Shown piece by piece: positions 23,241 to 50,141 of a stretch of 64,000 bases of DNA. Numbering within the stretch: position 1 is the first letter of the stretch; each line of letters begins with the position of its first letter. The notes under the pieces were generated by a model. That model saw only the letters and a program-made list of their open reading frames with translations. It was not told the DNA's origin and searched no databases. The stretch is from Podarcis erhardii (lineage: Eukaryota), in NCBI GenBank assembly GCA_964252035.1, contig OZ176201.1, one strand, 5' to 3'. The translations under genes were made by a program, and so were the position numbers.

Positions 23241-23360
23241 GCGGAGGCCTTTTCTGGATCCACATGTCCTTCCAAAGTGGGGACATTGGTTTCTGGGCGG
23301 GAGTTGATCACGGTGTGGATTTGCCAAGCCTGCCTTCCGCTTAGCACGTTTCTCCCTTTA

Positions 23361-23587
23361 CAATGGTACCTCGGGTTAAGAACTTAATTCGTTCTGGAAG
23401 TCCGTTCTTAGCCTGAAACTGTTCTTAACCTGAAGCACCACTTTAGGTAATGGGGCCTGCTGCTGCTGCCGCGCCACAGGAGCACAATTTCTGTTCTCAT
23501 CTTGAAGCAAAGTTCTTAACCCGAGGTACTATTTCTGGGTTAGCGGAGTCTGTAACCTGAAGCGTCTGTAACCCCAAGGTACCACTG
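23361..23587. mobile_element. Tc1/mariner-type MITE
   Basis: TIR CA(G)TGGTACCTCGGGTTA/TAACCCCAAGGTACCACTG, TA on both sides. Confidence 0.85.
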
Positions 23588-25457
23588 TATTTGGCCCTTA
23601 GGCAGAGGCAAGGAGCTGTATCAGTGCCCCCTGTCCCCAACTCCTTGACAGCTCAGTCACCACTTCACACTCTGGGCGATCTTCCCAGAGCCTAAGCGGC
23701 ACCATTCCCCCCTCCTGCCTCCCCCCCCCATGCTGTGCCGCTGCGCCCCCAGGTGAGTGTATAAGGGTGCATCCTAAAACATCATAGTTGTGCACCTAAA
23801 AAAAGTCACGTGTTAAGTCATCCTAAATCCCATTTCATTGTTTTTAGTGGGATATGCAACCTGATCCTATGCTTGTCCTCCCTTGCCCAGCAAGTCGTGT
23901 TTTGTTCACTAGGGAAGTTGAAACCATAATGCTGTTTTAGTCATGGCATTAGTAACTTTTGCTGTCAAAGGTTGAGCTAGACCTACACAAAGAGCAACCT
24001 TAGGAACGCTCACCATTTAAATGCATTCAGTAATTGTAATTGGGACTGGCATCGGCACCTGGCAGCCTTGGGCAGCTGGGTCTAGTCCCCATTTTAATTT
24101 CCACAATGTTTCCAGTGTAGCGTCTCTCTGGTGCCTAGGAGGTGGCCAGACTTGGCTGCCTAGTGCTCCCACTGCTTTTCTAGCCTGATAATAGCAGAGG
24201 TGGAAGCAGATCCTAGGAACAAACGAAGAAAGGAGCAGAAGAAGAACACAAGGGGGTCGTGTGGCTCACATCCAGAACAGCTGCCATGAAACATAACCAT
24301 CAGGCCATATATGGCAAAAATAGAGATTGACTTTTTCTTTTCTTTTTTATCCCACTTGGAACAGCTTCTTGTTCTTGCTCGGTGAGATATGATCTCTCAG
24401 CAGTTTTCTTAAGCAGCTTTCCCTGAAAAAAGAAGTGTTACAAAGCATAATATATATATTAAAGTCTCATATAGCATATGCTTCTCCTCTGTTTTCTGAA
24501 CACTGGGATCTGCAAACTTCAAGGCCCTTTTCAGTGTGAAAGGCAGCCATTTCATGCTCATAGCCTACTAACTGGGAAAAGCTCCCCCTGTGCTTTTCAG
24601 GGTGGCTTTTGTTAAACCAGTTGAACATGAGTGCTGGAGCGGGTGATAACCCTATTCATCATGAGCCGAACCCTGGAACAGGAAACTCAAGCAGATCTCT
24701 GTCAAGATGACATATTGCAGGCACCACTTGCCTTCGCTTCACTTTGCATAGCAGCTGCAACACAAGCTGTTGCCAGAGACACCCAGGCATGCTCACTAGC
24801 CCCCAAACAGCTGCCCAGACTTGCTACAATGGAGTCCAGAGACACGATTCCCTTACCATCACTCTAGACATTTCCAAAAAGTCAAAAAGGCCTGACTGTA
24901 TCAGTATTCTTTTATACACTATTTTTGCCAGTGCAGTTTGGCAACAGGGTCCAGGAGTCACGCAGCCTGATCTTATGTATGACTACTCGGTGAATAAGCA
25001 CCAATGGATTCCAGGGGATTCAGATGTGATCATTCCCAGGTAAATGGTAATGTAGCCTTCTTGACCAAGGTTCAAATGTTCCAGAATTCACCTTGAATTG
25101 CCTTTCTAGTTATTCTAACAGAACAACATGAAAGGCTTTCATATAACGGTGATATTGTTTATAGGATCAAAGCAGACAGCACAAGACAGTTTATTATTAT
25201 TTATTATATTTACATGGTGGTGGTTGTTGTTTTACACTGAAGTGTCTTAAAGTGACTTACATAACAAGCAATGAAATAAAAAAAAAATGCGCATGCATTT
25301 TCGGACTCTCTCCAGGACTGCAGTTTTCAGAAAGCCTCAAAGTGCTTTTTCAATGAAAACTACAAATGAACCCTTTTTGTAGATTATTAGGTAAGGCAAG
25401 TCTGCAACCTGCTGGTCGAGGCAGGAAGAGCAAATGACCCATATTTCCCAGTCAATA

Positions 25458-28918: not shown

Positions 28919-31259
28919 AGACATGAGCTGCCTTACAGTTTATATTCTTTTTATTTAAAATTGTACACCACAGCAATATGTTTAAGGAACAGTGTTAGAG
29001 AAATAATTTTTACCAAGAGACATCCAGTGTCATACAAATGGACTTCCCTCGGCTCTCCTCCCTCTGCACTCAGCTTTGAAACAACCACGTTCAGAATTCT
29101 GCAAGCTGGAGAACTTTCCCTCACAGATGCATTACAATGCGGAACAGTCTGAAGTTCACTGTTAGAATGTTATGTCCCAGGAGGCAAATGTGTGTTCTGG
29201 GGACATTTCTTCGCAGACTTTTCTCTGTGGGTGCTCTGTAACTGTGGATTACCTTCCATTTGAGGATTCATTGGCCTCTGTCCTCCCACCTATTCACCTT
29301 TCTTTCTAGGCTGGCCACCAGTTATGTTATCTAACTCAAAACTCACATCTATTCTGAGTCTCTGGCACATTAGGCAGAATCTGTGGTGTGTAATATATGA
29401 AGGAATGATATGGTCAGCACCCTGTCTCATCTCATTTGATTTCTCCACTTCAGTGGATCCAGTCCCCAGTTATGTGCCAGCTCTTCTGTCAGAGTACGCC
29501 AACCACCTCAGGCAACACATGCTGAGGGACAGTGACTGACGCTCCTTAGGTGTTCCTCCTGGTTGTCTTCTTGCATTGGAAGACAAATGTTGGCCTGTCC
29601 CAAACTCTCAGAACTAGCCATTACAGAAATAAAATTCAGTAATGAAAGAAGGCAGCCCAATTGGCTTCTGTGCATGGAATGGTGAGGGTGCCATCTTGTC
29701 CTCCGTCTTGGGCAGAAATTTTTTTTGAATTGGCTCTGGAGCAGCCATGATTGTATAGTGGTTAGTGCTCTGCATTGTGGATTGGCCCTGGAGCCTGCCC
29801 ATATACCAAACCAGCAATTTTCAAGAGTAATGAATTGTCCTGCCAATTTGCAACAAAAAACGAATTTCCATAGCTCCTTAACTCTCTGCTAATTGCCTTC
29901 ATTTGCCTGTCTCCTCCCTTCCACCTCATATATGGGTGGGAAATAGCCTTTAGCTAGTGTGATTATAATTTATCTAGGAAGACTTGGGTGTTATTTTTCA
30001 GGTGCAAGGTAATAATACTGGCTCCAAATTGAAAAGTACCCATTTATGTCGGTAGTGGTGGTGATGCAGATCCAAAGATGGGTAGAGGGTTCTCAGCATG
30101 GATGAACTGGAGTGTAGTAGTCATTGTGTTTCTAAGATGTGTGAAGCAACAGCTCAAGATTCCACTAGGTCACCCAGCAACTTTAATTCAGTGGCAGTCA
30201 ATGTGGTATCCTCCAAATTTTGTTGGGCTACACCTCCCATCAGCCCTTGACGATATGACCAATGCCCTGGACGGTGCAAGCTGAGTCCAACATCTGGAGG
30301 GCACAGGATCAGTTGCCCCTACTCTAAACCCTAAGGAATATGCAAGCCATGTGAACAACTAACCTTTTCATATGACTGCAAATAATTTCATAGTGAATTG
30401 CTTTGTTGTCAGCCTCCAGACTCACAGAAAGGCTATAAGCAGCAGATTATCAGATTTGCAGAGGAACAGCCTCTTGGATCCAAAGTTGCAGAGAGGTCCT
30501 AGAAGTAACATGTAGAAGAAAGGAATGTAGCACATTTTTCACAGCCAATGTGAAATGATATTAAGGTGGCAAGTGCTGTGGGAAGAGCTTTAGTCTGAAA
30601 GCCATAGCCAGGGATATCCAAAAGCTGAAATATGTTTAGATTGTACTTAAGAAAACTTAATTCCCAGGAAGTTTGTCCCATTGGACTCTGAACTGTATGA
30701 AGGATTACCTACAGAGTACTACTGTTTCAGGGATGTAGAGCTGGATGCAGAGCAGATAAATCTGCTCTAGTTTTGTGGGTTCAGAGTAATTTTTTCCTCC
30801 TCCTTTCCTTTCCACCACAAGGAAAGTCATGTTTCAGTCTAAGTGCACAGGGAATCAATCATTCAATGCCTGTATAGATCATGAATCAAAACCATTTTGC
30901 TATTGCAGACTATGGGTGACTGGTTGGTCCTTGAACTAGTTGCATGTTAGTTAATATCATTGGGGGAAAGTCACCCTGCGATGGTCTGAACTGAACCCCT
31001 GATGATAATGCCGTTTAATCATGATAGTGCCGTTTCTCTGAAGAAAGAGTTTCAGCCATTGGAGAGTGTTGCATTTTAAGACCGTGACGAATATGCTTGC
31101 TGGAGGGATATTTTGCTTGCTATTTCATTCTCATGGACCTCAAAGGTCATCCAGTCCAAACCTCAGCCGAGGCAGATTGTCAGGAAGGTTTGCTGCTGTT
31201 GTTACTGTTTTTATAGTCGCACCAGTGTTTATGATATCTCTGGATTCTTTCTTTTTCAG

Positions 31260-31635
31260 ATGTCAGTCTCGGATTCCGTTCTCTCCTTCTATCAAATGGT
31301 TTCCCGTAGAAAAAGAATAACAGCCGGTGCCTGTAGAGAATCGAACTTGCGTCGCTGCCTTTCCACCTCGGACTTAGTGGCTCTGGGTGTGGGCAGTACG
31401 TTGGGTGCAGGGGTGTATCTCTTGGCAGGGGAAGTAGCCAAGACCAGCGCGGGCCCCAGTATCATCATTTCCTTTTTGATTGCTGCTCTGGTGTCCATCC
31501 TGGCAGGACTGTGTTACGCTGAGTTTGGAGCCCGGGTGCCTTTGACCGGATCAGCTTATCTCTACAGCTACATAACAGTTGGAGAGCTGTGGGCATTCGT
31601 CACCGGTTGGAATCTCTTGCTCTCCTATATAATTG
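31260..31635 (+). CDS. SLC7A2-like coding exon 1 (MSVSDS...WNLLLSYII)
   Basis: 376 nt from ATG, donor |gtatca; TM1-TM3 CAT motifs. Confidence 0.95.
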
Positions 31636-34600
31636 GTATCAACAAGTTTTGGGCTTCTGTGTTTTGACATCTACCATGTGGTTTCATTGATAAGCCAGAG
31701 AGATGGGCCTAAGAAATAATAACTAGGCAGGCAGAACTTTTTTTAAAAAAAGTTGATGTGAGTTGAATTTGTAGCTCAGAGCATGCAAAAGGTTCCAGGC
31801 TCAGACTCTGGTATTTCCAGTAAGACTGTGAAAGGTCCCATTTTTAATCCCTGGAGCACTGTTGACAGTCAGAGAAGGGTCTAAGGCAGCTTCATGTGAA
31901 TGGTTCCGACAACCACATCCACGCATGCCCATTTCATCATTGGAAAACTTGCGTGGCATTCAACTAAGTTTTTCTGTTAGTGCAAGGATTAGTGCTAGGG
32001 CAAGGGGATGTGTGCCCCCACACTATCCCCAGATCTTCTCTGGAGGCTTGGGAGAATCTGCAGAACAAATTCAGGGGAGAGAACCAGAGAACGTTCTGCT
32101 GCAGAAGGAGAAATCCTTGCACTGACGGACTGTTCACCTAAGCACAATGTTGAATGCAACCCCTAGACTACACACAGTGTGGATGCAAACAAATGCTGCA
32201 TCTCCTGTCAAGAAATGATCCCCTATTTCTTTTGGGCCTCAGGGTATTTAGTCTGCGGTTTTCCAGTGATGTGATGGGCATGAGAACTTCCACTACCAAT
32301 TGTTGGCAGCCAGTCATTTATTCATTTGAAATAATGATTAGCACAAAACCATGAAGAATCCATATGTGAATACAAAATGTCAGTAGAGCAGAATAGGTCA
32401 GTATACACTTATTTAACATGACCACCCTCCAATTTGATACAGTGACAGGACATATCTCGTGCAGAGGGGTTTTTTTTACTGCAAATAATGTGGTCATTTA
32501 AGACACATATTTATCTGGCACATTTTGTACCCAGCCCTGATCCAATGAAGGTCAGTATAGAAATGTTTTGAATGATAAAATAAAATCCTATCAATGTCTG
32601 ATAACTAAAAGTTGCTGCTCATTTGACTTCCATGGGAATCTTATATGATAGGAGAGCTTCCACTGCAAGTTCAAATCACGGTGGGTGCATCATTCCCAAT
32701 TTGCAAAAAAGTGGGTTGAGTGATAAGCTTTTTATTTTGTACTTGTTATTTGACATAACATAGGTGATGTGTCGTCTGGACTGTCAAAAATGCAGTGTTC
32801 CCTATAAAAGCAGGATGAGCGTAAAAACAGCCCCCCCCCCAATAAACTGAGATGAGAAGACAGAATGAGGAAAAAAAATTATGCAGCCAAGGGGTGAAAT
32901 GGGCGAACACAGAGGCAAGAAGAAAGACATGCTCTTTGTAGTGTCATATATAATGTATGTGCTGCCCACACAGCAGTTTAAGGCTGACATACTTCCTTTG
33001 AAAGAGAGTGCTAAAAGGGCACAGCTTCATAGTACACAATGGACATCTTATACCTGAGAATGCTGCTGTTTCGCATGGACCATCAGAGGTTCATAAGCCT
33101 TGAAAAGCTGATACTTTATACCTGCGTACATAGAACAGTACATAGGGCCCTGCAATATCCCTCATTTTTAAGGTTCAATGTACTGTACCCATATTTGGCA
33201 GTGTTATCTTTAAATTGGCTGATTCTCTACAGGTACCTCCAGTGTAGCCAGAGCATGGAGTGCTACTTTTGATGAGCTCCTGGGCAAACGGATCGGCACC
33301 TTTTTCAGCACCCATATGGCCATGACCTCTCCAGGACTAGCTGAATACCCTGATATCTTTGCTGTTTGCCTCATTGTCCTATTGACAGGTATGCTTGTAC
33401 TGATTTTTTTAAAAAAACTATTGTAAGGATCCTTGAAACCCACCCTGTACCAATTTTATTGGAGATTGCCCATTAAATTTATACATGCAAGGAGTTTTTC
33501 CCTTCCCACCATGGACTTAATGCAACGCTGACAAATTGGTTTTGAATAATGCTAGCATCTCAGTATAGTTTCCAAACCCTGTAATTGTCACCCACAGTAG
33601 GGTCGGGGGAGAAATTAACTTGGGTTTGCATTTAGCTTACCTAATTCACATTTTCAGAAACAATAAGCCCAATTCTGAAACAGTACCCAATTTGCACTTT
33701 CTGAAGCCATTCATGAGCACAGCAATCCTTTGAAATTCACACTTATTCAAATTTTGCACTGCAGTTTTCAGCCAAGTAATGTGAATAACAAAGTGTGTAT
33801 ATAAATACATACGCATGAATGACAATAACATCCAAGATGCATTATATATGGGAAAATTGCCTTGCAAAAAGGTAAAATTGCATATAAAAATGTTTATACT
33901 AGGAAAAATTCTCGCAGAAATGCTTATTAATTTTCCTGAGAATTTCTTCTTAAAAGACATATGCAAACTTGTGGGAATGTGGCAATCTGAATTTAAGATT
34001 GGAAAAATGAGAAATGGAGAGAAACCAAAACTGGCCTATTCACCCATCCCTACCGACAGGTCTTTTGCATTTACTCTGTTACTGTCTTTCTTGTTTCTGC
34101 TGGACTTGCCACTTGTTCTTTAACAGTTCTCCGTGGTTTCAAGCTAGGGTCTTTCTCAGCCTTACCTGAGCTTGCCAAGAATTGAACATGGGACCTTCTT
34201 GATGCAAAGTCCAGTAGTAAAGGACTAGAGGACATGCTTTGTGGAGCCAGTGTGGTGTAGTGGTTAAGAGCGGTAGACTCATAATCTGGTGAACCGGGTT
34301 CGCATCTCCGCTCCTCCACATGCAGCTGCTGGGTGACCTTGGGCCAGTCACACTTCTCTGAAGTCTCTCAGCCTCACTCACCTCACAGAGTGTTTGTTGT
34401 GGGGGAGGAAGGGAAAGGAGAATGTTAGCCGCTTTGAGACTCCTTCAGGTAGTGATAAAGCAGGATATCAAATCCAAAACTCTTCTCTTCTTCTTCTTCT
34501 TTCCATGCAGAAGGTCCAATATTCAATTCTTGGCAAGTTCAGGTAAGGCTGGGAAACACCCCTGCTCTCAGGGTATGCTCTCAGGGTTTTCCATATGGTA

Positions 34601-37600
34601 GCAGCAATTGCTCATATCTACTGTACTTTGCAAAGGACACTGCCTCAGGCCTCCATCCATAATAGTTGTGAGGCCCAAGCAATGAGACATTGTATCCGTT
34701 GACTCCTTAGGTCTTCTCTCAGCTGGGGTAAAAGAATCAACCACAGTGAATAAAGTCTTCACAGCTGTCAATGTGCTCGTCCTTCTATTCATTATAATCA
34801 GTGGATTCATCAAAGGGGACCTGAAGAATTGGAAGATGAGCAAGAATGATCTGTTAATGACTGCTACCCTCAGATTTAGGTAAGAGAATGGCTACACAAG
34901 CTCTTGGGCTGCAGTAAACACAGGCCACGCGGGTTATATTTCTACAGAGGTTACAAATTATTTAAATATCTATTTGCTGTCCTTTCATGAAATCCCCAAA
35001 CAGCTACCTGACTTTGCCTAATGATAGGACAGATCCATGCCCACCTACCATATTCCTGCCTCCTTTGCTGTACTTGTCTACCAACTATATCCAATCAGAT
35101 CCTTCTGACATTGACTTCCTTTATGTCACCTTCCTTGACAGGAACCAATCCGGCAATGGAACTTGGGACTTTGGGGCTGGAGGGTTCATGCCCTATGGCT
35201 TCAGTGGGACCTTAGCTGGAGCTGCTACCTGCTTCTATGCTTTCATTGGGTTTGACTGCATTGCGACTACAGGTAAGCAAGAAAGAAGACAATTACAAAA
35301 TGTCCATGATTGATAACCGCATCCGACACCTAATAAAGAAAGGAGAAAATATCTATTCACCTCACAAGGGAGCCAGTTGTTATTAAAGCTCTCCTGTGTC
35401 CAATTCCCCTCCTAAGAGGAGTGGAATGTGTTGTGACTTAGGCGTTGCTGTTGTTGGAACAGAAACCCATAGGCAATCCTTTTGGAATAACCAAAGCACC
35501 ACGTAAATCTTTGCTTAATCTCTACAGTGACAGGTTAACCATACTCATGTGAGACAATGTGTGGATTTTAGAATGGTGTGACTTCTTGTGTTTATGTTTA
35601 CCAGGGGAAGAAGTAAAGAACCCCACAAAAGCCATCCCAGTGGGGATTGTTCTCTCTCTGCTCATCTGCTTCTTAGCCTATTCCGGTGTTTCAGCTGCCT
35701 TGACCCTGATGATGCCTTACCACCTTTTGGACACCATGAGCCCTCTGCCAGTGGCTTTTGAATACAATGGATGGAGCATGGCCAAATATGCTGTGGCTGT
35801 GGGGTCTCTCTGTGCTCTGACCACCAGGTAAGGACAGGATGTGCAATTTTCCCCATGCTTGCATTTTAAGGATATAAGAAGAGCATTGCTGGATCAGACC
35901 AAGGGTCCATCTAGCCCAGTAGTCTGTTTCCAGCAGAAGCCAGAGAGATGCTTCCAGGAAGCTCATATACAGAGCATAGAAGCAACACCCCTCTTCCCCA
36001 TTGTTTGCTCCCCAGTTAGTGATATTTAGAGGTTCTGTTTATCTAACATGATACTAATTGACCTTGATAGACTGGTGCTCTATGAAGTCATCTAATTCAC
36101 TTCCAGGGCTGTCACTGTATCCTGCAGCAGTAAGTTTTATAAATTAATGGTACCTTTTGTACCTTTTGGATCAATGTAATTAGCTGACCCCACACTCTAG
36201 TATTATAAGGGAAAAACACAGTACCAGTAATCTTCCCTCTCTCATTTTCTCTCTCTCTATAATTCATAGTTTCATAAAACTCTACTATCATGTCTGCCCT
36301 TGGATCCTCTTTCTACAAAGCTCTGGTCCTCTGGGTCATAAAGATTTCCGTTTTATGATGGTGATAATCATAACATCTCTTTGTGTATCAGGCATGTTTT
36401 GTGCACCAGCTACCAAGGTGCAAACGTGATTTCACTCATGAGCAGAGATGGAGCTTTGGGGTACAATGAACTCCTAAGGCATTGCTTTGACCTCAAGATC
36501 TACAGATCTACACCACTCTGATAATAGCAATTAATAGTTTTAAGACTCATTTCGACTGAAGCAATAGGAAATCCTGGAAATTTGTTCTCTATGCTTGATA
36601 AAGGTCTGCTTTATTGTGTGTAATGCAAGGTCTCTTGTACATCTTGTTGTACAAGAGTCGGGTAAAGAAAAGGAAGAAGAGGCTATGATCTTGAGAATTT
36701 TCTTCACTTTCTCTGCCTTCTTGTGTAGCTTGCTAGGTTCTATGTTCCCGATGCCACGGATTTTATTTGCTATGGCCAGGGATGGACTCCTCTTCCAATC
36801 TTTGGCCAAAGTGAGCAGCCGACAGAGCCCAGTGATTGCAACTCTGGTGTCTGGAGCTGTTGCAGGTATGCATGGAAAAAGGCTCTAACATTGACTAGAC
36901 CTCAGAATGAACCTGCCAGTAGACAATGGACTAAGAATCTTACTTTGGACTTGATCTAGTTTAAATATGAAATAAGGAACCTAAGAAGACCCCTGCTGGG
37001 TCATATTTGGGTGCACACATAGTCCAAAGCAAGTATGGTCAACATTGTGTCCTCCAGATGTTGTTGGACTCCAATTCCCATCAGCACCATTCACTGTGGT
37101 CAATTGTCAGGGATGATGGGATTTGGAGTCAATAAACATCTGGAAGGCACCATGTTGGTTTTCCCTGCTTGAAAGCAATACTAGTTGCTTTAAAAAATAT
37201 GTCTAGAAACGGGACATTAGGCTAGCATTTCAACACGGAGCAGGTCAGCCTGTGGGACTGAATGTTAGACTGCAAGAGTTCCTTGACCTTCCCCATGCCA
37301 GAATCAGGTGGATTCCAAGGTGTATCTCCATATGCTTATAAAATGCAAGCTTTTCATTAGTGACTAGGGCCTGTTTCCCTGCTTGCTTTGCTCACCAGCA
37401 TTATCTATTCCCACAACCCCACAACCCTCCCACCTCAACCCCTTCCTCCTCCCTTCACACTTGGCCAACTTCTCCTGCTGCTTTACCTAAACATCTCCCA
37501 TCTATCCCAGGCATAATTCCTCGCTTCTCCTTGATCACATCTCCATCCTCTGGGTCCCTCTTCCTCACCTTGCCTTGGCTGCCTCCTGCTCACCTGCCTG

Positions 37601-40600
37601 CATCACCATCCTCTTGTTCCTTCCTTCTCTCCTTGCCCTGCATCTCTGTCATCTGGATCCCTCCTCCTCTCTTCTCCTTTCTTGCTCCACCTGCCTGCCT
37701 GATGGTCTGGCAGCTCATCACACTGAAGTTCACAGTGCCACTTGTCTGTGACTTCCTTATAATTTTATATATTAGAGAGAAACAGAAAGAGACTCCAGCC
37801 AATACTCTAACACCTTCTCCTCATGAAGAATGAATCCATCGAGCCATTTTTGTGGTTCCTTTCTAATATTGTCTTGGATTGAATAAGGACAAGGTAAAGC
37901 AATCATTTAAATGATCCATGTTATAACCTCATATCTCAGTTTCAAGGAGATTGCACTGGAGTGCCACACTGAGCACATGAGAGACCACTTAGGTGTGCCT
38001 TCCACATTTAGCTTGATGAAATGCTATAGCTGACAAAAAAAGTCACTATGGATGGATTTCTTTTCTTTTTCTCTTTTTTTCTAAACAAGATTATGTAAAT
38101 TGCCTCTCTGTCAGGATGCTGCCAGCGGCTCCCAGCTGGTTGCCCAGGAAGTAGAAGGACAAGGGAAAGTTTCTTACTGTCCTTTTTAATTCAGTATTTA
38201 CAGAGAGAGGCTATAGAACCCAGCCTCTTGGATAATGGTGATGTCCCGAGTAAATCTCCATCCCCCGTCTCTCCCACTTCCTCATCCGTCACTTCTACGG
38301 GTGCTGCTACGTGCCCTTTGTCTTTGAGCTCGTTGCTCTCCTACTTTTAAGGCTCGCCGGGTTCTGGGAGAGGGAGGGGCTGGGATGTTTTCTAATGACA
38401 CCGTGCCAGCCAGCTGCTGTTCCGATTGTGCCTCCTCCTCCTCCTCTCCCATTATTTCCCAACTTTCCCCCTCATCTGTCTCTGAGCTATGACATCCCAG
38501 AAACCACTGTTGTAAATCTATACTGTCTTCCTCTTCCTCCTCCCTGGGAGGATCAGGATGGGGAGGCGGTCTCCACCATTCCTCCTCTGCCCAGTCCCTG
38601 ACACCCTCGTTGAAAGGAGGTCCCCAGGCATGTACTCTCCTTGATGGGAGGGAAGCTCGCTGGGAAAGGGTTTCTGCAGGAGACCATATCTTCATCTATA
38701 AGGCTACAAGAATTAGCAGAAAATATTTGGTGGTGTTTTCTACAGGCCCTCTTCCTTCTTCTCACAGGTTTAATGGCTTTCCTTTTTGATCTGAGGGCCT
38801 TGATTGATATGATGTCCATTGGGACATTGCTGGCCTACACACTAGTAGCTGTCTGTGTTCTTCTCCTCAGGTAATGAGTTGTCCGTTATTTATTTCTCTC
38901 TGATGCAGATATGGAGTGCTCATCATGACAACATCCCATGTAATATAAATGTCATTCCAGAGAAGTAGCTTCATTGGTCTGTTTTACTTTTAAAAAAAAG
39001 AACCTCCCCCTATTGTAGGATAAATAAAACACCTTCTGGAGCTGGCTTATGGAGAAAATGGAAGCATGGCGGTCTTTATTCCAGATTAGTTAATCTAGAA
39101 TACATGTCTGTGACTCTTTCCATTATCAACACTGTCTGCACTCACCACTGGCATGAGAACTCCAATAGGCTACCCCTGATGAAATGCAGGGGAAATCAAA
39201 ATTGGCTGGGTAGAATTTCAAACCATGCTAGACTAGCTTCTATTTTACACATTTTAAACAGCCATACTGACAGTGATGCAATTATTTAGCAGCTGTTTAG
39301 TCTGCTTTGTAGCAATTATCTCCTTGAAACTAGTAAGATATCAGTGGGAACAGCTTTTGGATTTCTTAACCCCACACACAAGTAAATGATAAAAGAACAA
39401 TTCATCATAAAAGAGATTATTCAATCGCAAGGCACAGTCTGCAAGGCCTCCTTGGGCATTTCTTTGTTCAGAATCTTGTTGCATGTGAGTGAATGTCATC
39501 TTTACCTTCTCTGAGGCTTTCTTTGAGCTGGACATTCTTGGAAAGCTTGCACTGCCAAGACCACTTCTACCGTCAGCCAGGGATGCTGCAGATTCCACTG
39601 ACAAAGCTATCTGGACACAAGGCAGATACTAACTGATGTGTTCATTGATGTTTAACTTGCTTTGCAGGTACCAACCTGATCCCAGCTCCCTTGGCCCACC
39701 AGAAAAGAAAGGTCTAAGCAGAATACCTTGGGTGGACATCCTCATCCATCCTCAGATGATCCCGAACCAGAGCTCCTCCACATTAGTGTCCCATTCTGTG
39801 CTTGTCATTGGTGAGTACTGGAGCATCAGTTGGAGGGGGGAAATGCAGTTTGCATTTACAGGCAAACTTGCCTGATTCAGGCTTTGGGAAATGATACCCG
39901 GCCGCTGTAAATATTTGTACTTCTTTGAATTTTGCACTGTATACAAGTTATGCAGTGACCAAGCAATGTATACATCAGTGCATTAGGTAATAGAAAATAT
40001 AAATATTAGGGAAATGCGCTTTGTAAAAAATGTGTATATGAGGCAACTTTGCATTTAAAAAGGTACTATTAGAAGAAAATTCTCACTGAAAAATGCAGGT
40101 GAACTTTCATGAGGGTGTAACAAAAGAAATCATAAACTGATGTGGAAATTGAACTTCAGATTGGAAAAATAAGAAATGAGGTCTTTAAGTTAAGGGAGCA
40201 GGGTGAAACCAAGCAAGGAGCTGTTAACTATAAAGAATCACCCTGCTTAGTTATTACAGGCCTCACTTGAAACAAGCACAAATAACTGGTTCATAACATT
40301 ATCCGGTCAACTGAGCCTTGCCTTTATGATTAGTTCTCTTCCAGTGCACTTGTTGTGGTGCATGGGGTGGTCTTTTGTTCCAGGAAGATGCCCCCTGCTT
40401 CCTCACAGCATGGTTTTCAGAGTCCATTTTCTCTCCAGCTGTCCTAGTCTGCATCACGTGTGTGCTGAGCACAGCAGGACTGCCATGTTTGTTATCTGGA
40501 GGTGCCTGGTGTGTCACCTGCCTTGTTCTCCTCTTCCTGGGAATTCTGGTGGTGTCCCTAATCATCTGGAGGCAGCCACACAGCCAGAAGACAGCAGACT

Positions 40601-42198
40601 TCACGGTAAGGAAGAGACTTCATAATTGACACTGCCTAGCAAGCCTCATGACTATGTTTGACGTGTTGTGAATGTTCACGGGAAGCATGCATCTACCTGG
40701 GAGTAACTCAACACATAGGATTGCACTATAAGGGTACATAGAGAAATTCCTGTCAACAGGGGGTTTTCTGTGTGGGGTGAGATCCACTTCTTACCACCTT
40801 TGTTTCTGACCTGAGGGCTGTTTATCTGCTCCTCATTGTCCTCCTCTTCCCAATGCAGCCTGTGTATTGTATGTGTGTGTGTGTTTGTGTGTGTGCGCGC
40901 GCACGCCAGCTTGACAATATCCTCCTTAAATTGTGGTAAACTGGGCACAGCACTCCAGGTGTGGGAGTACTTTTCTCCCTGCATGCTCTCTCAGAGTTAC
41001 CAAGGGCCATATCAGGGAATAATATTCTTTTTCTAACGTTCATGTCTAATCTCAAATTATCTCTGCACTCGTTTAGGTTCCCTGTCAGCCATTCTTGCCC
41101 ATCCTCAGTGTCCTGGTCAATAGCTACCTAATGGTCCAACTCAGCGGTGACACCTGGCTTCGGTACATGGTGTGGATGGCTATTGGTAAGCCTTTAAGAA
41201 ATGTGCCACAATTCAGGGAACTTCAGGAAATAATAATGATTTGGAAAGTAAGTGTCATCTGAATTTATTATAAGGCAGTGCTACCTAGCTCTTATCAGGA
41301 CTAATACAAGATGGGCATCAGGTTAGGCAGTGCCCTGATCACCACGGTGGGTGTGTTTGGACCCCCTGGTCTTCCTTCTTTTGCCAGGATTAGGCAGCAC
41401 AGCAGCAAAGATGCTGGTCTAGCTGCTGAACCAACCATTGCATTTTCTAATATTTTGCTCCTTCTCATGGAATTGGTTCATGCATACCTGGTGGTTACTT
41501 GATGACTGCAGTATCAGCACTGTAGCACACCTGAGGTGGAGCCAGGCAGCAGGGTATGTAAATTAAATAAAACTGATGTGTTTAAATGGTCCATCATTGA
41601 TCTAATTCTAGAGACAGAGCTTTCACATCACACATCACACTCCAATACAGTGCTTTTCAACAGAGACAGTTCAGATGTTCAACAAGGCAAGTCAGTCAGC
41701 AAGCGCCGAGTAACTAAGAGAAATCAAATTAAATCCATGTATGTGTGAATGAGTTGGTGAAGGAATTTGTGCCTAGAATATGACAGTTACAGAAGAGCAT
41801 TTCATCTATAGGCTAAATCAGGGGTAGCCAACAGGGTGCCTTCCAGACTTTGTAGACTACAACTCCCATAATCCCCTGGCATTGCCCATGCTGGTGGGGC
41901 TGGTGGGAGTTGTAGTCCAAAACATCCGTAGGGCACCAAGTTGGCTAACCTGAGCTAAATGTCCTGATGTGATTTCAAATGAAGGAGCTTTCTCTAATAC
42001 GGATATATTTGTGAGGGGGAGGGTCTATCTGGGGCATTGTTGGTTCACCTTGTCCTCTTATGTGCTGTAGGCTTCCTAATTTACTTTGGCTACGGGATCC
42101 ACCACAGTGCAGAGAGATCCAGCCACCAAGATCCATCCCCAGAGAAGACAAAGCAGGCAACAAGTGACATGGATCCAGCTGTCACCTGGGAAAAATAA
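31260..42198 (+). CDS. Cationic amino acid transporter, SLC7A2 (CAT-2)-like paralog, 613 aa, CAT-2A-type
   Basis: Exons 31260-31635, 33233-33388, 34711-34879, 35142-35272, 35605-35827, 36729-36865, 38768-38870, 39668-39810, 40439-40605, 41077-41185, 42071-42198. Total 1842 nt, all GT-AG, phases consistent, no stops. CAT motifs [47 protein letters not shown] and IYFGYG present. Confidence 0.95.
33233..33388 (+). CDS. SLC7A2-like coding exon 2 ([19 protein letters not shown]...[18 protein letters not shown])
   Basis: 156 nt, GT-AG; lacks the extra residue that SLC7A1 and SLC7A3 have before LAE, as SLC7A2 does. Confidence 0.95.
34243..34502 (+). mobile_element. tRNA-derived squamate SINE (Squam/Sauria-like) with (CTT)n tail
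   Basis: Box A GTGGTGTAGTGG, box B GGTTCGCATCTCC, body gtgaccttgggccagtcac, tail ctcttctcttcttcttctt. Confidence 0.8.
34711..34879 (+). CDS. SLC7A2-like coding exon 3 ([24 protein letters not shown]...)
   Basis: 169 nt, GT-AG. Confidence 0.94.
35142..35272 (+). CDS. SLC7A2-like coding exon 4 ([20 protein letters not shown]...GFDCIATT)
   Basis: 131 nt, GT-AG; N-glycosylation sequons NQS and NGT in the extracellular loop. Confidence 0.95.
35605..35827 (+). CDS. SLC7A2-like coding exon 5 ([16 protein letters not shown]...GSLCALTT)
   Basis: 223 nt, GT-AG. Confidence 0.95.
36729..36865 (+). CDS. SLC7A2-like coding exon 6, CAT-2A-type ([46 protein letters not shown])
   Basis: 137 nt, GT-AG; matches the CAT-2A alternative segment. 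Confidence 0.95.
38109..38603 (-). mobile_element. Putative solo LTR or LTR-like repeat in SLC7A2-like intron 6
   Basis: Termini TGTCAGG...CCTGACA, flanks CTCTC/CCCTC, AATTAAA on the minus strand. Confidence 0.55.
38768..38870 (+). CDS. SLC7A2-like coding exon 7 ([34 protein letters not shown])
   Basis: 103 nt, GT-AG. Confidence 0.95.
39668..39810 (+). CDS. SLC7A2-like coding exon 8 (RYQPDPSS...SHSVLVI)
   Basis: 143 nt, GT-AG; begins with the conserved RYQP. Confidence 0.92.
40439..40605 (+). CDS. SLC7A2-like coding exon 9 (AVLVCITC...[15 protein letters not shown])
   Basis: 167 nt, GT-AG; IWRQP motif. Confidence 0.93.
41077..41185 (+). CDS. SLC7A2-like coding exon 10 ([36 protein letters not shown])
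   Basis: 109 nt, GT-AG. Confidence 0.95.
41819..41952. mobile_element. Palindromic hAT-type MITE
   Basis: TIR CAGGGGTAGCCAAC/GTTGGCTAACCTG; TSD GGCTAAAT/AGCTAAAT. Related copies at ~37040-37170, ~42296-42430, ~43750-43860, ~46495-46600, ~58805-58935. Confidence 0.8.
42071..42198 (+). CDS. SLC7A2-like last coding exon ([13 protein letters not shown]...VTWEK*)
   Basis: TAA at 42196-42198; candidate AATAAA at 43378-43383. Confidence 0.94.
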
Positions 42199-44258
42199 CT
42201 CTGTGGTGTGGAGCAACTATCTTCCCTGGTGAAAGGACTTCATAAGAATGGGATTTCACCCTTCCCTTAACTATCTATAGATGTGTCTATTTGTAGCACT
42301 CCAACCTGGTGCTCTCCAGATGTTTTGGGCAACAACTCCCATCAGCTCTGGCCAGCGCAGCTAAACTTGCTGGGATTGATGGGAATTGTAGTCCAAAACA
42401 CCTGGAAGGTATGAGGTTGAGGAAGGCTACTCTTGAGCGATACAAATAATTGGATACTCACAGTTAAGTAATGCATGCAATTCATATCCATTGGCTGAGC
42501 TGGTGTAGCATTGTGGCTGAGTTCACCAAGCTAAGTTACTGGAAGCATGGAACAAGGTTTGCTGGTGCAACGGGACCTTTCCCTACCCCCTAAATCTGCT
42601 CTGCAGAGTTTGGGGAAGCCACGGAACAGGTTTAGCATGGACCAGGGGGAGAAGTCCCATTGCACAAGTGGATCTTGTTCTGTACCCCCATTTAGCATGG
42701 TTTCGTTAGACAAGCTACAGTTCCCACAGCTTTGCTCCTCGCCTCCCCAAATCTGCATTGTGGGGATAATGGCAATAGCAGTGGCACATCTGGTTGTGCA
42801 GGCTTATAAGCCATTCAGGAAGTATCCCTGCTGCCCAGTTGGCATTGGCCTTCCAAGGTATGGAGAGTAGCTGAGCTGGCAGCAGAGACACCTCTGATGG
42901 GCCACATCCCGTCACTCCCTCATGTGATTCTAATCACATGGGGGAAGCTGAATATCCAAAGGGAACTCCATCTAGAGCCCAGCACCAAATACACACACTT
43001 CATAAAGGCAATCAAATGGATGGCAGACCCGGCCTATACTTGGCAACGGGTGTTTCCTAGGGCTACCACTTTCCAGTGAGGCTGAGCAAAAACCTGGCTG
43101 GACATACTGTACCTGACAAAGAGAAGGACCTCTTCTTCCTCATGTTCCAGAGAGGGCAAAGCTGGGCACTGTAGTTTATCCCAAGTTTATGCACAACAGA
43201 CCTCTGTCTTCTACTGCTCATCCAGTTTTGCTTGCTGAAATTTGAAATGTGCTTTATCCCGCAGAAGTGTCTGTAATTGTCCATTCCTTGGGGTTTGGGA
43301 GCAAACAATGCTAAAGTTGTGACAAACTTTGTTTAGACCATCTGTTACAAATTCCCCATTTTCACTCATCTAAAACTAATAAAAAGGAACTTTTATTGTT
43401 GTTATCATTTATTATCTTACTATTAATTGATAAAAGTCGCAGCTTATTGATTGAATCATGCATGTGCATGAGCTAATTTGCTCAAAAGCAGGTTGCTTCA
43501 TGTGCTTTAGTATCACAGGTTTCCCTGAAGTTACTCGCAGAATGGTGGCGCAACATTCCATTATTTACTTCAGTCTGTTGCTTGTGATGTGCCAAAAAAC
43601 TTTTCCTGTATTTTTTTGTAACCATTGCCCCATCAATTAATGAGCAAATATATTGCTACCATTTAGCCCTCTGTTCTATTCATGCTCATTACCATTACAA
43701 ATACTGACTTTGGGTGCGTCCAGGTGTCATTCTAATGGTTTGTTTTAGACCAGGCATGGCCAAACTTGGCCCTCCAGCTCTTTGGGGACTACAACTCCCA
43801 TCATCCCTAGCTAAGAGAACCAGTGGTCAGGGATGATGGGAATTGTAGTCTCCAAAACATATATATCTATATCTATACACATAAAGTTTATAAACAGTGA
43901 AGGGTACAAATCAGTTTTTTAATGGGGGGGGGGGATCTGAAGGTTCTTTTTTTTATCTGGTCAAGTGGAAATCCAGATAAGAAACAGGGGCGGGATTCAC
44001 CTCATTGAGTCCCGTCAGAGTAAGCCCTCCTTCACTTGCTAAAAAAGGAATTTCCCTTGCCTCCACCTGTACCCTTCTGTACCCCAGATTGGCTCTGGGT
44101 GGTCAGGGGTGTGATGGAAGGAGAGGGAGGATCGTTCCATCTGGCCAGCTGCAATGCTTGCAACAACAAGTTGTTCACCATAGTGTGACGTTTAATTTTA
44201 CCTTAGATACTTATGTCCCAGACTCCCAGTTGTATAGTCACAGCAATATACTGGTAAG

Positions 44259-45375: not shown

Positions 45376-48300
45376 GTAAGTCATGTTTTCCTTTGTCCTT
45401 TGTCCCTCTGTGTTCCTACGATTCCCCTCCCTTCTCTAGCAGAAAAATAAAAGTTAAAATGCTCAGGGCATTTCTCCATTTCCCGCACAAGGAATTTCTT
45501 GTGGGGAGCATGAACACCCACAGCCTCTCATTGCTGCCGTACACCAGGAGCCAATCTGGGGTAGAGATCAGCTCCTGAGCTTTGACCTGGTCTTGGACTA
45601 GATTGCAAGTGCAGATTTCCTACATGTCCAAACAACTGGGAACACTGCTATAAATATGGGAAGGGTAGAGGCGTACCTAGGCTCCTTTGCACCCTTGGCA
45701 AGGAGCTGTATTGGCACCCTCCTACAGAAAATACCCACTCTACCATAATAATCACATTAGAAATTACTACATTTTACAGGACCCAAATACTTGAAGCTTC
45801 CAGAGTTAGGGCAATTTGAGGAGGAAGGGCAAAACAACCCCAAATACCTTTGTGTTGTGGTGCAAGAATGATAGGAAGCTTCTCCCACTTTTAATCCTAT
45901 CATTGCAGCATCACTGTGTTGTCACACAGTGACACTCCATAGTTTGGTAGGTCCTTTTGGGGTATCTGCCCTTGCCCCGAACCAACCTCTAGGTACACCT
46001 CTGGTGAAGGGGCAGACAAGAGAACAAAGCTACTCAGCAAACTTGCAGAATCAACATTCGCCGGAAGATTTGCTGAACATGATATATCAGGACCTTTTGA
46101 GAATGTCATGGTTTGGGTGGACTATGCTTGCAGATACATGCATTTTGCAAAGAGCCCAAAATTTTAATTGAGTTTTTTTAGAGCGGGAGAAATTCATTCT
46201 GCAGGCAAAGATAGGAAGCCTCCTTTAAGGCAAGATGTTCTGTGAACCCCTAGGCTGCCAGCTGGTTCCAGTGCTTGTGGGTCTCATTTGAGCTCAAGTC
46301 CAGAGAAGCAATAGCAGATGGTGTGGTGGGACCAAGGTACTTACCTGACCTCCTGTCAGGTGAGTCGCTGGCTGCTGCTTGCCAGGAGGGGTAAGGTGGC
46401 AGCAAGGTCTGTGGGGTGCAAATGTACCAGTGGAGCCAACTGGGGGCTCTTGCCCATGCATGTGCACCATGCCACCGCCAACCAGGTGCTCTCCAGCTGT
46501 TTTGGACTACAACTCCCATCAGTCCCAGCCAGCACAGCAGCACTGACAAGGGCTGATGGGAGTTGTAGTCCAAAGCAGTTGGAAGGCATGCACTTGGGAG
46601 AAGCTTAATATCTGTTAGTGTATTGTGTACAGTGGTACCTCGGAAGTCGAATGGAATCTGTTTGACTTCCAAAACATTCAGAAACCAAGGCACGGCCTCT
46701 GATTGGCTGCAGGAAGCTCTTGCAGTCAATCGGAAGCTGTGAGAGTCACATTGGACATTTGGGTTCCAAAGAACGTTCGCAAACCGGAACACTCCGTTTG
46801 CGGTGTGTTTGCGGTGTTTGGGAGCCTAAACATTTGACTCACAAGGCATTTGACTTCCAAGGTAACTCTTTGTATTCAATTGGCAATAGTCCTGATAGGT
46901 GTGGCAAGATGACGTTCATAAATAGAAAGTTTAAAAAAATAGGATTGGTGCAAGAGACTGGTGACACCAGCCCTATATCATGTATATATGAAGTGAAGGT
47001 CAAGGCCACTACTGCGATGTTTCATATAAATGTTTATCTTCGTAGCTGAATGCCAAAAAGAAAAGCCTTCCAAAGCTTCGGAGAAGGCAGCCACGAAGGA
47101 GCCGAAAGCCAGTGGCTCCAAATTTCCCAAAGTGCCAAGCAAAAAACTTAAACAGGGGACTCCAAAGTTTCTAAAGAAAAGCCAAGTTAAAGCCACGACT
47201 GTTCCCAGGGAAGGCAAGCCGACCATTCTGACCAGGGCAGTGGCAAAGGGGCAGTTCCAGAAGGTGTCCAACACGCTGGTGCTAAGAGCAGGCGAAGCCC
47301 TCGACTTGCGCTGCAAAGGAAAGACGGTCAAATGGAGATACCCTCCCTACTTGGAGGATGACGACGTGGAGAGGCGACTGCGGTGAGCATATTGACGGCA
47401 ACTGTTTGTGTTGGATAGATGTGACGTGGTCTTGCGTTCAGTGGTGAATGTGCTTATGGATGGAACGTCCCAGGTCTGGAGGGGAAAGCTCTTCCTTGCC
47501 TCATCTTTGCCCTTCTCTCTTTCAGAATCAAACACTTTGAGAGGCACAGTCAGCTGACCGTTGCCAATTCCACCGCGGCAGACACGGGCGAGTACAGCTG
47601 CTGGTCCTTCCAGTGCCGTGACAGCGAGTGTCGTGATGGAGAGGACAAGATGGGCAAAACATTCATCTTCTTCACAGGCCAGGCTTTTTTCTTGGTTTAA
47701 GGCGGTGGGGGGTGGACCTCTTCCTCCCTGCTTCTGGCCTCCCCTTTCCTAGTCATTATTTTCTAATATACTCCCTACACACTTATGAGGGTCACTTGAC
47801 AATACTGGGCAGGGCCAGAAGAAAACTGGGTGGAGCTGCAAATGTGAATATTGTGTCTGTGCAGTTGGCTACTTTTAAACACACTTACAGCACCACCAGC
47901 CATCCTCGGTCCATGCATATTCCATCAGGAGGGTGAGAGGAGGGCTGGTAAATGAAATGGCTGTGGAGGGGGGTGGGTATGGCCTGGAGATTAGTCCAAA
48001 GGTGCCATTTCAAAAGCTGGGAACCCTTTTCACTGAGAGGCAGCATCTTTTTTGACAAATGATCGCATGTGGATTTTATAGAGAGGCTATAGATGACAAT
48101 AATGTATGGCCCTGCCCAGGAGAAAATGCTGTCTCTGCACATCCAAACGCCCCTTTCTGTTTTCCCCTCAGACCCTCAGGAGCTATTTGTGCCCACAGAA
48201 GATTACTATGAAGTGATTCAGCTGCGTACAAACCACCCCACCCTCCTGCCGTGCCAGGTGACAAATCCAGCAGCCAAAGTGACGCTGCACCGGGAGTTCC

Positions 48301-50141
48301 CCCCTGAGAAAGTGCTTGTGGATGGACTAGGCATCTCGTATGATGTGAAGAGGGGCTTCATCATCCACCGCCCACAACCTTCCCATGCTGGCTCCCTCTT
48401 CTGCATGGCCAATGTGGATGGAGTGAGGCAGATCTCCACAAAATACATGCTGATTTATGTGAACTGTAAGTTGCCTTAACAATTAATCATCTATCTCTCT
48501 ATCTCCCAAGTGTGTGTATGTGTATAAGAGAGAGAGGGAGAAAGAAAAGTCCACCAATCTGCTTGCCTTTTTCATTTTAATGTTTTTTAAAACTCAGCTT
48601 GTCAAATTCAGATTAATTCAGCCCAAACTGTCCCAAAAGGGTATGTGGCTGCTTTAGAGATAAAAGAAGTTCATCTCATCATCAAACAGTTCCATTCTTT
48701 TGCAAAAGGGAATGTGACTATGAGAATGCAGGTGTGTTCATTCTATCCAAGGGATGTGCTTATGATCAGGGAGATTCAGTCATGCCGATCAAGGAAAAGG
48801 AGTCTTGGTTTGCTGACCACAGGTTGCAAAGGAATGCTCAAAACTGTTTCTAACCTAATTTAAAATGATTTATATACAACTCCCAGGCAATCAGGACCCA
48901 GGCAGAATCTGGGAAAGCCTGTGGGAGGTATTGTCACTTTTCATAATGTCCACTGAATGAGGCCTTTTTCTCCAGGCAAGAAGTGATTCTGATTCGGCAG
49001 GGAGTTGGCGGCACCTATCGAAGTTTAGAGTCATTATTCTAGGTGACACCTTGATGCAAATCTTTGCCCATTGCTGGACTTGCACAAAGGCTACCAGTCA
49101 GATTCAGAAGGCTTCACAGGCAAGGCCTTGTCGCAGAGCATCACTAAGGCCAGAGAGAGTGTGGGAGAGGCCTCAGACTCAGGATCCACTGCCCCATTTC
49201 CATTCAGCCTGTGCTCCAAGTGGGAGAACTGTAGAATTTCGCCATGCCATGCCTATCTAACAACTCCACAAGGAGCAATGGGGGAGTGGCAGGAACTGAT
49301 GCCTATATGCTGGTTTCTTTTGGTGTGTGTGTTTTATTTCCAACTCTGCAGATCCTTCTTCAGTTCCCAAGCCAGCTATCAGAGCTTCAGTGGCCTCCTT
49401 CCATGTTGGAGACAATTTCAATGTCACCTGCACTGTCTTTGGGGAACCAGAAATTGCTGTTGATTTCACGTGGGAATATCCAGGACAGCAAGTAGGTAAC
49501 AGGTTGCTGATGGGGTGAGTGGGTGTGGGATAAGAAAAGTGGCTTGTACTGTAACAGTATGGGTCTTTTAAGCCCGTCTCCTTTCCTGCTGATCTGTGGA
49601 ATTTCCCCCTTAGAAAGTGAACAAAGGCTAGCCCAACCCACAAACCTAGCCAATGAGGGTGTACAAAGCCAAGCTGAATAATGATTGGCCTGACCTCCTC
49701 AAATGAGTAGGCCAGAATGAAAACATAAATTGTTCCTCTGCAGATAAACACCAGGCAACCTTGTCATGCGGTTTGCTTGCACCTGAATAATTTCCAAGTT
49801 ACAGGAGTGGGTGCCGCTAGAATTCCACACACTGGGAAAAGCCACTGCTAAACTCTCTTGTGCACTGACTGCCATGTGCTCTGCCATGTTTCTCAAATAA
49901 TGCCCTTCCTCACTTTCAGATTGGCAGACCACCCTATGTTCGCGAACGCACAGATTTGGTGCGGCGTGGTGGGCAGGTGCAGCAGGAATCTGAGAGCATC
50001 CTTTACGTTGATGAAGCACGTGCTGTGGATGATGGTTTGTACACCTGCACTGCTGAAAATCTGCAAGGAGGCACTGCAGTGTCCACCCGCATTCGCTTGG
50101 TTCCAGCCTCACCAGCCCCAAAGAAGGCAAAGTCTGGGTAA
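45321..50141 (+). CDS. PDGF receptor-like (PDGFRL) paralog, secreted Ig-domain protein, 399 aa
   Basis: Exons 45321-45375, 47046-47382, 47526-47677, 48172-48465, 49352-49491, 49920-50141 (1200 nt, phases consistent; intron 3 donor is GC). Signal-peptide-like N-terminus, three Ig-like segments (ADTGEYSC, LPCQVTNP...LFC, NVTC...DDGLYTCTA), no transmembrane or kinase segment. Confidence 0.93.
46630..46867. mobile_element. Tc1/mariner-type MITE, second subfamily, decayed right end
   Basis: TA+CAGTGGTACCTCGG; internal aaccaaggcacggc...ctgattgg...caggaagc shared with 25458. Confidence 0.75.
47046..47382 (+). CDS. PDGFRL-like exon 2 (Lys-rich segment and start of Ig1)
   Basis: 337 nt; GQFQKVSNTLVLRAGEALDLRCKGKTVKWRYP resembles PDGFRL. 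Confidence 0.93.
47526..47677 (+). CDS. PDGFRL-like exon 3 (IKHFERHSQLTVANSTAADTGEYSCW...KTFIFFT)
   Basis: 152 nt; only a GC donor at 47678 gives the required phase 1. Confidence 0.9.
48172..48465 (+). CDS. PDGFRL-like exon 4 (Ig2)
   Basis: 294 nt, GT-AG; ELFVP...LLPCQVTNPAAKVTLHREFP...YDVKRGF. Confidence 0.95.
49352..49491 (+). CDS. PDGFRL-like exon 5 (Ig3, first part)
   Basis: 140 nt, GT-AG; NVTCTVFGEPEIAVDFTWEYPGQ. Confidence 0.95.
49920..50141 (+). CDS. PDGFRL-like last exon (Ig3 end and basic tail)
   Basis: 222 nt, DDGLYTCTAENLQG, TAA at 50139-50141; ATTAAA at 50273-50278. Confidence 0.94.
   Translation: MGRPPYVRERTDLVRRGGQVQQESESILYVDEARAVDDGLYTCTAENLQGGTAVSTRIRLVPASPAPKKAKSG

Follow-up and report, generated by a model that had tools for sequence, protein, structure and literature searches.

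A cationic amino acid transporter gene related to SLC7A2, with a single CAT-2A-type exon, in Podarcis erhardii

In a 64,000-nt stretch of DNA from Podarcis erhardii (contig OZ176201.1 of assembly GCA_964252035.1; "the window" below means this whole stretch), we analyzed a transporter gene which an initial annotation, made from the sequence alone, had described as fixed for one form of an exon that SLC7A2 splices alternatively. In SLC7A2 this sixth coding exon exists in two mutually exclusive versions, A (as in CAT-2A) and B (as in CAT-2B). The window gene is probably an expressed and intact fourth vertebrate cationic amino acid transporter of the y+ type, 'CAT-2-like' (zgc:175280 in zebrafish; 2-like below). 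It would be the sister gene of SLC7A2, born together with a PDGFRL-type neighbour in a duplication that preceded the bony fishes, and it would have lost the B exon and kept a single exon of the A type. Low affinity is predicted for it by analogy with CAT-2A.

The exon occupies 36729..36865 (+) and is 137 nt long, in phase 1, with a peptide of 45 residues, as read directly from its borders and translation. Its acceptor is ...tgtgtag/CTTGCT... at 36729 (AG at 36727-36728) and its donor is ...TTGCAG/gtatgc after 36865 (GT at 36866-36867). The segment spans the end of transmembrane segment (TM) 8, intracellular loop 4 and the start of TM9. A homologue-guided splice model gives the gene 11 coding exons and ten introns, all of them GT-AG, with an open reading frame (ORF) of 613 aa that begins with the ATG at 31260 and ends with the stop at 42196-42198. 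The length and peptide of the exon, its junctions on both sides and the 613-aa ORF had all been proposed in the initial annotation, and they stand.

The same junctions were observed in spliced RNA. We surveyed 11 low-share sequencing runs guessed to be of RNA type and examined four of them over 34700-40650; these come from three studies and carry three organism labels. Contigs from the four runs join 35827 to 36729 (skipping 901 nt) and 36865 to 38768 (skipping 1902 nt), with GT..AG ends. Two single contigs include exon 6, one of 1490 nt across exons 4-9 and one of 1755 nt across exons 3-9. This A-type exon was the only version of exon 6 found in the contigs, and the other joints inside introns 5 and 6 lie in high-depth repeats. 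In intron 6 such repeats (~36889-37286 and 38083-38679) showed contig depth of up to ~1000, many loose ends and non-canonical joints in all four runs.

Two points temper the conclusion that only one version is made. Assembled contigs can lose rare isoforms, and this evidence therefore shows the presence of a form rather than the absence of rare ones. Additionally, a contig of 4334 nt from run X3 follows exons 3-6 but departs at 36846, 19 nt short of the end of exon 6. An alternative donor, a junction with sequence past 40650 or a chimeric assembly could each explain the departure; a GT follows the departure point (36846-36848), and ~3.1 kb of the contig falls elsewhere.

The hallmarks of the A type that had been noted at first reading are present. 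The exon has Arg at the position of human CAT-2A Arg369 (AMARDG), and its loop is one residue shorter than that of CAT-1 and CAT-2B: 11 residues instead of 12 from DGLLF to the next Pro, in an exon of 137 nt compared with 140 nt for the Varanus B exon. When 2-like sequences were left out of the profiles, it scored 92.3 bits for A and 82.7 bits for B, and A was preferred over B by 3.5-14 bits in 15 of the 15 orthologues tested. Seven discriminating positions follow A, all of them in the core (11-13, ILF; 17, Arg; 28-29, VS; and 31), while Q32 and S33 are seen in A exons only. The one-residue deletion is shared with these exons as well. The A-type core extends over positions 11-33.

Other characters of the exon speak against a simple A-type assignment. 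The margin of A over B is only ~10 bits, and five flank positions follow B (Met8, Ile36, Ser41, Val44 and Ala45), of which 36, 41, 44 and 45 belong to the part that enters TM9. The exon reads as a mosaic of an A-type core with B-type or ancestral flanks. Several of the B-like flank states are found in invertebrates too, and they may be retained ancestral characters.

What such a segment would mean for transport can be judged from work on related carriers. The affinity of CAT-2A is lower by a factor of ~ten and it shows no trans-stimulation, and its difference from CAT-2B maps to the TM8-TM9 loop (PMC5803215). The same paper, citing Habermeier 2003, names Arg369 and the missing Asn381 as the low-affinity determinants, in agreement with the annotation. 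In the proposed scheme every 2-like transcript would encode the shortened loop together with Arg at the Arg369 position. If it resembles CAT-2A in this, the carrier would have low (millimolar-range) affinity for Arg, Lys and Orn, and on balance we lean towards this prediction. The constitutively low-affinity, high-capacity transporter of the annotation is likewise a prediction from these two characters.

The strongest competitor is a gene that is A-type in sequence without being low-affinity. Arg and the shorter loop would then not reduce affinity, as they do in human CAT-2A, in a background with a B-like entry into TM9, and the carrier would show ordinary high-affinity y+ transport or intermediate kinetics. 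We regard this as a real possibility, though the less probable one. The mosaic structure, with B-like residues toward TM9, would suit it, and the affinity determinants have been mapped only in human CAT-2A/CAT-1 backgrounds, by means of chimeras. In the bacterial homologue GkApcT, Arg coexists with micromolar affinity: the R334E exchange brings a five-fold gain, in which the half-maximal inhibitory concentration moves merely from 2 to 0.4 uM (PMC5803215). Moreover, Arg at the Arg369 position is found together with a longer loop in GkApcT and in a plant vacuolar CAT, so that Arg is not in itself a derived mark of low affinity; this too detracts from the prediction. Against the competitor, both mapped determinants are present in the 2-like gene and conserved from teleosts to birds and platypus, and the effect of Arg in the bacterial homologue runs in the same direction. 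The window-type Arg aligns with GkApcT R334 in ungapped HMMER alignments to 5OQT/6F34.

The comparison with distant carriers also bears on the order of events. Arg may be the old state at the Arg369 position, and B-length segments of invertebrates have Asn or Ser at the Arg/Glu position. Judging by these alignments, Glu is the change that defines the vertebrate B type, and the one-residue deletion is the true vertebrate novelty of the A type.

A cationic substrate range of the 2-like carrier is well supported by homology. At the positions of GkApcT E115, A119, D237, V317 and M321 the window type shares S, G, D, S and S with mammalian CATs, where the residues at these five positions have been linked to arginine recognition (PMC5803215). 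At the position of GkApcT Ile234 (YAFIGFDC, exon 4, 35142-35272) the window and Podarcis sequences have Ile; mammalian CAT-1 and the snake orthologue have Val.

A second alternative concerns the origin of the exon. Its A-like state might be convergent or due to gene conversion, with an exon that descends from a B-type exon or is itself a B/A hybrid and acquired Arg and the deletion secondarily. The B-like residues at 8, 36, 41, 44 and 45 point in this direction. This view can also draw on an exon-only tree, for which the Arg/Glu and indel columns were removed, leaving 39 columns: its backbone was unresolved, and it did not decide whether the 2-like exon groups with A or B. Forcing the non-2-like A exons together, with the 2-like exon among B exons, cost 4.8 log-likelihood units and was not rejected (p-AU, from the approximately unbiased test, 0.28). 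Forcing all A exons together cost 3.0 units (p-AU 0.39), and forcing 2-like and CAT-2A together cost 1.1 units (p-AU 0.45). Thus, the exon-level tree that had been suggested as a check rejected none of the three groupings and does not decide for or against the A-type reading, for which the diagnostic characters and the argument from the gene tree are therefore the basis.

Those characters make a secondary origin improbable in our estimation. Seven core positions favour A, Q32 and S33 are A-only, and the deletion shared with A exons is unique, while most of the B-like flank states are also invertebrate states and so can have been retained from an ancestor. Furthermore, the A/B pair is present in SLC7A2, the sister gene, as well as in CAT-1, the outgroup, so their common ancestor must have had an A exon.

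The distribution of the two versions across the family was examined in ~240 exon-6 segments. Where a segment has Arg (rarely Gln, once Gly), 11 residues separate DGLLF from the next Pro; where it has Glu, Asp, Lys, Ser or Asn, this spacer is 12 residues long. The sole exception to this pairing, the B exon in an SLC7A2 model of the teleost Scleropages (P0226), combines Gln with a 12-residue spacer. All 113 of the 2-like orthologues with a readable motif have the 11-residue spacer, with Arg in ~110 of them and Gln in three. The Gln-bearing orthologues that we identified belong to a penguin and a crane (P0255, P0258); they are natural variants at a reported affinity determinant. In Danio slc7a1b (CAT-1b; P0431, P0433) a segment of A length has Asn in place of Arg, another natural variant of this kind.

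Both versions occur in SLC7A2 and in CAT-1. Gene models that mistakenly string the two exons together, B and then A, were found for SLC7A2 in a monitor, a cobra, a stork, a whale, a cat and several teleosts, and for CAT-1 in paddlefish and a cyprinid. A-type isoforms of CAT-1 are present in catsharks and other sharks, in a chimaera (P0442 A-type, P0375 B-type), in Amia and in teleosts; one and the same contig carries both the A-type (P0405) and the B-type (P0417) isoform in Scyliorhinus. For teleost slc7a1a/b, alternative exons 6a/6b have been described and linked to the CAT-2A/2B paradigm, which was proposed to extend beyond SLC7A2 (Fish Physiol Biochem 2020, PMC7584565). Lampreys have A-type exons in two different genes (P0393/P0062 and P0419/P0472), and one lamprey locus (L003) has the B exon only, so that the two versions were not seen together in any one cyclostome gene. 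The Petromyzon protein P0161 contains an internal tandem repeat of ~210 residues (~385-585 and 585-800) that takes in the B exon twice, which is probably a model or assembly artefact.

Other loci have one version each. The 2-like loci of sturgeon, alligator (where intron 5 is ~150 nt) and platypus carry an A-type exon only; the gecko SLC7A1 (CAT-1) locus and the Chanos CAT-3 locus carry B only. The sturgeon 2-like locus also shows a partial extra 5' end of exon 6 and exon 7 twice (L002:10739-10786, 13972-14079, 14676-14783). These extra copies are a local duplication or an assembly artefact, and the sturgeon protein entry (P0219) is flagged UNVERIFIED_CONTAM.

Since CAT-1 and SLC7A2 both carry the pair and 2-like is the sister of SLC7A2, the two versions must have been present in the common ancestor, with B lost later on the way to 2-like. 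The A-only loci of sturgeon, alligator and platypus make this loss an old one. In the ancestor, two mutually exclusive versions would have stood side by side, B upstream and A downstream; the 2-like paralog would have lost the former and kept the latter as its single exon. Two conjectures of the initial annotation thus find support: that the A/B pair predates the gene duplication, given its presence in SLC7A2 and in the CAT-1 genes of sharks and ray-finned fishes, and that different paralogs ended up with different splice forms, with A only in 2-like and B only at the gecko CAT-1 and Chanos CAT-3 loci.

No trace of a second exon 6 was found in the region 30000-43500 of the window. A- and B-type peptide profiles, run on six-frame ORFs of 30000-43500 with heuristics off, found nothing beyond 36729-36865, which matched at an expectation value (E) of 5.5e-32 for A and 1.5e-25 for B; the next-best match had an E of 0.69. 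The two exons of Varanus SLC7A2 (locus L001) are 296 nt apart, with B (19765-19904, 140 nt) upstream of A (20201-20337, 137 nt), and a relic would accordingly be expected in the 901-nt intron 5 of the window gene. Smith-Waterman searches of introns 5 and 6 with the B and A exons of Varanus and with the gene's own exon found no relic above shuffled sequence: scores were 23-26, shuffled introns gave means of 22-24 and maxima of 32-36, and exon-to-exon controls gave 85 and 93. Three profile matches at 36342-36685 (E 2-6) resembled a frameshifted B relic, and they were dismissed as noise when a DNA comparison with the Varanus B exon did no better than shuffles. The profile search and the shuffle comparison thus agree with the earlier statement that the flanking introns hold no intact alternative exon. 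The mutually exclusive B and A exons that are the hallmark of SLC7A2 were absent from the window gene, which has a single exon 6, the only one in the RNA contigs.

Searched against 1.84 billion representative sequences, the 45-aa exon peptide matched 632 proteins at E<=0.001. A full-length match, P0028, is 'cationic amino acid transporter 2-like' of Thamnophis. A word search found proteins of this name in snakes, lizards, tuatara, alligator, many birds, frogs, salamanders, platypus, lungfish and sturgeon, and the bichir member is called Zgc:175280 in UniProt. At the protein level the window gene is 97.7% identical to 'cationic amino acid transporter 2-like' of Podarcis muralis and 91.8% identical to that of Zootoca. 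Tested on the 97.7% identical Podarcis orthologue, membership of the CAT subfamily is shown by the permease core (AA_permease_2, PF13520, 1.1e-47) together with the CAT-specific C-terminal domain (AA_permease_C, PF13906, 2.4e-23), and the best PDB match of this orthologue is CAT-1 (E 1.8e-221).

The position of the clade was studied in a maximum likelihood gene tree of 40 proteins (LG+C20+F+G4, two invertebrate outgroups, exon 6 columns removed). The 2-like clade was recovered with support of 100/98 and the SLC7A2 clade, which includes a chimaera, with 97/89; the two are sisters (100/99). CAT-1 (99/98) and CAT-3 (100/100) formed the other pair of sisters (96/94). Cyclostome genes fell at the base of the tree without a resolved placement. 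An earlier tree with one long invertebrate outgroup had given a trichotomy of SLC7A2, 2-like and CAT-1+CAT-3, which is compatible with the later one; the tree was resolved once a second outgroup, sharks and more lamprey genes were included. The resulting arrangement, ((CAT-1,CAT-3),(CAT-2,2-like)), is the shape predicted by two rounds of genome duplication.

The neighbourhood of the gene is in agreement with this arrangement. In the window (from ~47 kb), and likewise in sturgeon (L002) and platypus (L004), the 2-like gene is followed in the same orientation by a PDGFRL-type gene with immunoglobulin (Ig) domains; SLC7A2 of Varanus (L001) has a PDGFRL-type gene downstream as well. The window Ig exons are 48-74% identical to the neighbours of sturgeon and platypus 2-like, and they had no match at E<=1e-3 in the neighbour of Varanus SLC7A2, of which only the first 6 kb were covered. 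From these matches, the transporter and the PDGFRL-type gene appear to have been duplicated as a unit, a two-gene block.

At the level of the locus, the features expected of an SLC7A2 ohnologue from the two rounds of vertebrate genome duplication (2R) are found: the duplication predates the bony-vertebrate radiation, and the neighbours were duplicated too. The pair of SLC7A2 and 2-like, with the PDGFRL-type neighbour, would predate the divergence of bony fishes and would be explained most simply by the second vertebrate genome duplication. One result sits less well with so early an origin: no cartilaginous-fish 2-like gene was found, so a date before the split of sharks and bony fishes rests only on the chimaera SLC7A2 inside the SLC7A2 clade.

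A third alternative would make the gene SLC7A2 itself, or else a lineage-specific copy of it that arose recently, with a B exon that was overlooked or recently deleted; it might draw on the database name 'CAT-2-like' and on the PDGFRL-type gene that follows, as in the human SLC7A2 neighbourhood. We consider it highly improbable and have rejected it on the gene tree and the lack of a B exon or relic. The 2-like clade stands apart from SLC7A2 and takes in lungfish, sturgeon, bichir and teleosts, as expected from the initial description of a paralog distinct from SLC7A2 itself. Both genes are present in squamates; Lacerta agilis has a distinct ordinary SLC7A2 (P0477) alongside the 2-like gene, so lacertids carry both. 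The Ig neighbour matches the 2-like-linked copies of sturgeon and platypus and has no match in the first 6 kb of the SLC7A2-linked copy of Varanus. The absence of a B-exon relic from 30000-43500 counts against a recent loss.

That the gene is a decaying or non-functional duplicate is the least credible alternative of all, for which nothing was found in favour and which we rejected given the intact ORF with ten GT-AG introns, the spliced transcripts in four runs and the conservation of the 2-like gene across bony vertebrates with intact binding-site residues.

A stop-to-stop ORF scan showed ten more transporter exons on the same strand as exon 6. The features of the locus are as follows.

31260..31635, plus strand, coding exon 1 (splice model; ATG immediately after the splice acceptor)
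33233..33388, plus strand, coding exon 2 (splice model)
34711..34879, plus strand, coding exon 3 (splice model; RNA joint)
35142..35272, plus strand, coding exon 4 (splice model; RNA joints)
35605..35827, plus strand, coding exon 5 (splice model; RNA joints)
35828..36728, plus strand, intron 5 (901 nt; expected site of a B exon, none present)
36729..36865, plus strand, coding exon 6 (borders, translation, RNA joints on both sides, A-type profile)
36866..38767, plus strand, intron 6 (1902 nt; interspersed repeats, without exon-6-like sequence)
38768..38870, plus strand, coding exon 7 (splice model; RNA joints)
39668..39810, plus strand, coding exon 8 (splice model; RNA joints)
40439..40605, plus strand, coding exon 9 (splice model; RNA joint)
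41077..41185, plus strand, coding exon 10 (splice model)
42071..42198, plus strand, coding exon 11 with the stop codon (splice model)
47030..50138, plus strand, PDGFRL-type gene with Ig domains (ORFs; matches the 2-like neighbours of sturgeon and platypus)

Because the ATG follows a splice acceptor immediately, at least one 5' untranslated exon must lie upstream of coding exon 1. A GC-rich stretch at 22400-23100, ~8 kb upstream of the ATG exon (GC 0.51 in 22001-24000), may be the promoter and 5' untranslated exon. At the alligator locus a gene for a 675-aa annexin stands head-to-head upstream of the 2-like gene (L005:1-953, minus strand); no annexin exon was found in the first 31 kb of the window. 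Elsewhere in the window, the minus strand carries coiled-coil-like ORFs in the region 56381-62816 (56381-56563, 57651-57857, 60585-60731 and 62619-62816), and runs of N occupy 8356-8555 and 57113-57242.

Among known carriers, CAT-2A of SLC7A2 is the closest to the window gene. Besides being encoded by its sister gene, it shares the exon position and the 137-nt length, the Arg, the shorter loop, a core motif that includes VS.RQSPV, and the PDGFRL-type gene downstream. In contrast, SLC7A2 selects the downstream exon of a mutually exclusive pair, whereas the 2-like gene has one exon, and positions 8, 36, 41, 44 and 45 of the window segment follow CAT-2B/CAT-1. The proteins differ in length as well (657 aa for human CAT-2A, PMC7584565, and 613 aa in the window), and the Thamnophis 2-like protein is ~55% identical to Varanus CAT-2. 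Teleost slc7a1a/slc7a1b have the same exon in Arg and Glu versions (PMC7584565), but they keep both and switch between them by splicing, whereas the window gene has the Arg version only. Tetrapod SLC7A1 and SLC7A3 belong to the same family and fold and have a single exon 6 (gecko CAT-1 and Chanos CAT-3 loci), but it is fixed for the B type, with Glu and the longer loop. Finally, zgc:175280 and the NCBI '2-like' models of reptiles, birds, amphibians, platypus, lungfish and sturgeon are orthologues which form one clade and all have the A-type segment; the window gene does not differ from them in kind and adds one lacertid copy.

These gene models are already public and named, and the gene is annotated but unstudied. 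Literature searches brought up no study of what the 2-like clade does or how it evolved. The only mention that we found is a table which lists zgc:175280 under SLC7A2, with adult expression higher in intestine than in kidney (PMC7584565); a trout study merely counts four 'cat2' paralogs.

The family offers a clean natural case in which the two splice forms of an ancestral gene were split among its daughter genes after duplication. A is found only in 2-like, B only in CAT-3 and tetrapod CAT-1, and both in SLC7A2 and fish CAT-1. We would tentatively go further, with a proposal that we hold to be slightly less probable than not: that among the y+ carriers CAT-2-like represents the fourth 2R ohnologue and that since before the bony-vertebrate ancestor it has been a dedicated, splice-independent carrier of Arg, Lys and Orn with low affinity and high capacity. 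The mosaic of an A-type core and B-type flanks could give it kinetics unlike those of both CAT-2A and CAT-2B. With an A-type loop and a B-type entry into TM9, the protein is a ready-made natural chimera for separating the part that sets affinity from the part that sets trans-stimulation.

Fishes, amphibians, reptiles, birds and platypus have, in this gene, an unstudied putative arginine carrier. No 2-like gene of therian mammals turned up in the sequence lists gathered here, while platypus retains the gene. This matters wherever mouse and human serve as the model for arginine, urea-cycle and nitric-oxide physiology. If therians lost the 2-like gene, alternative splicing of SLC7A2 would be their sole source of the low-affinity, high-capacity mode of transport.

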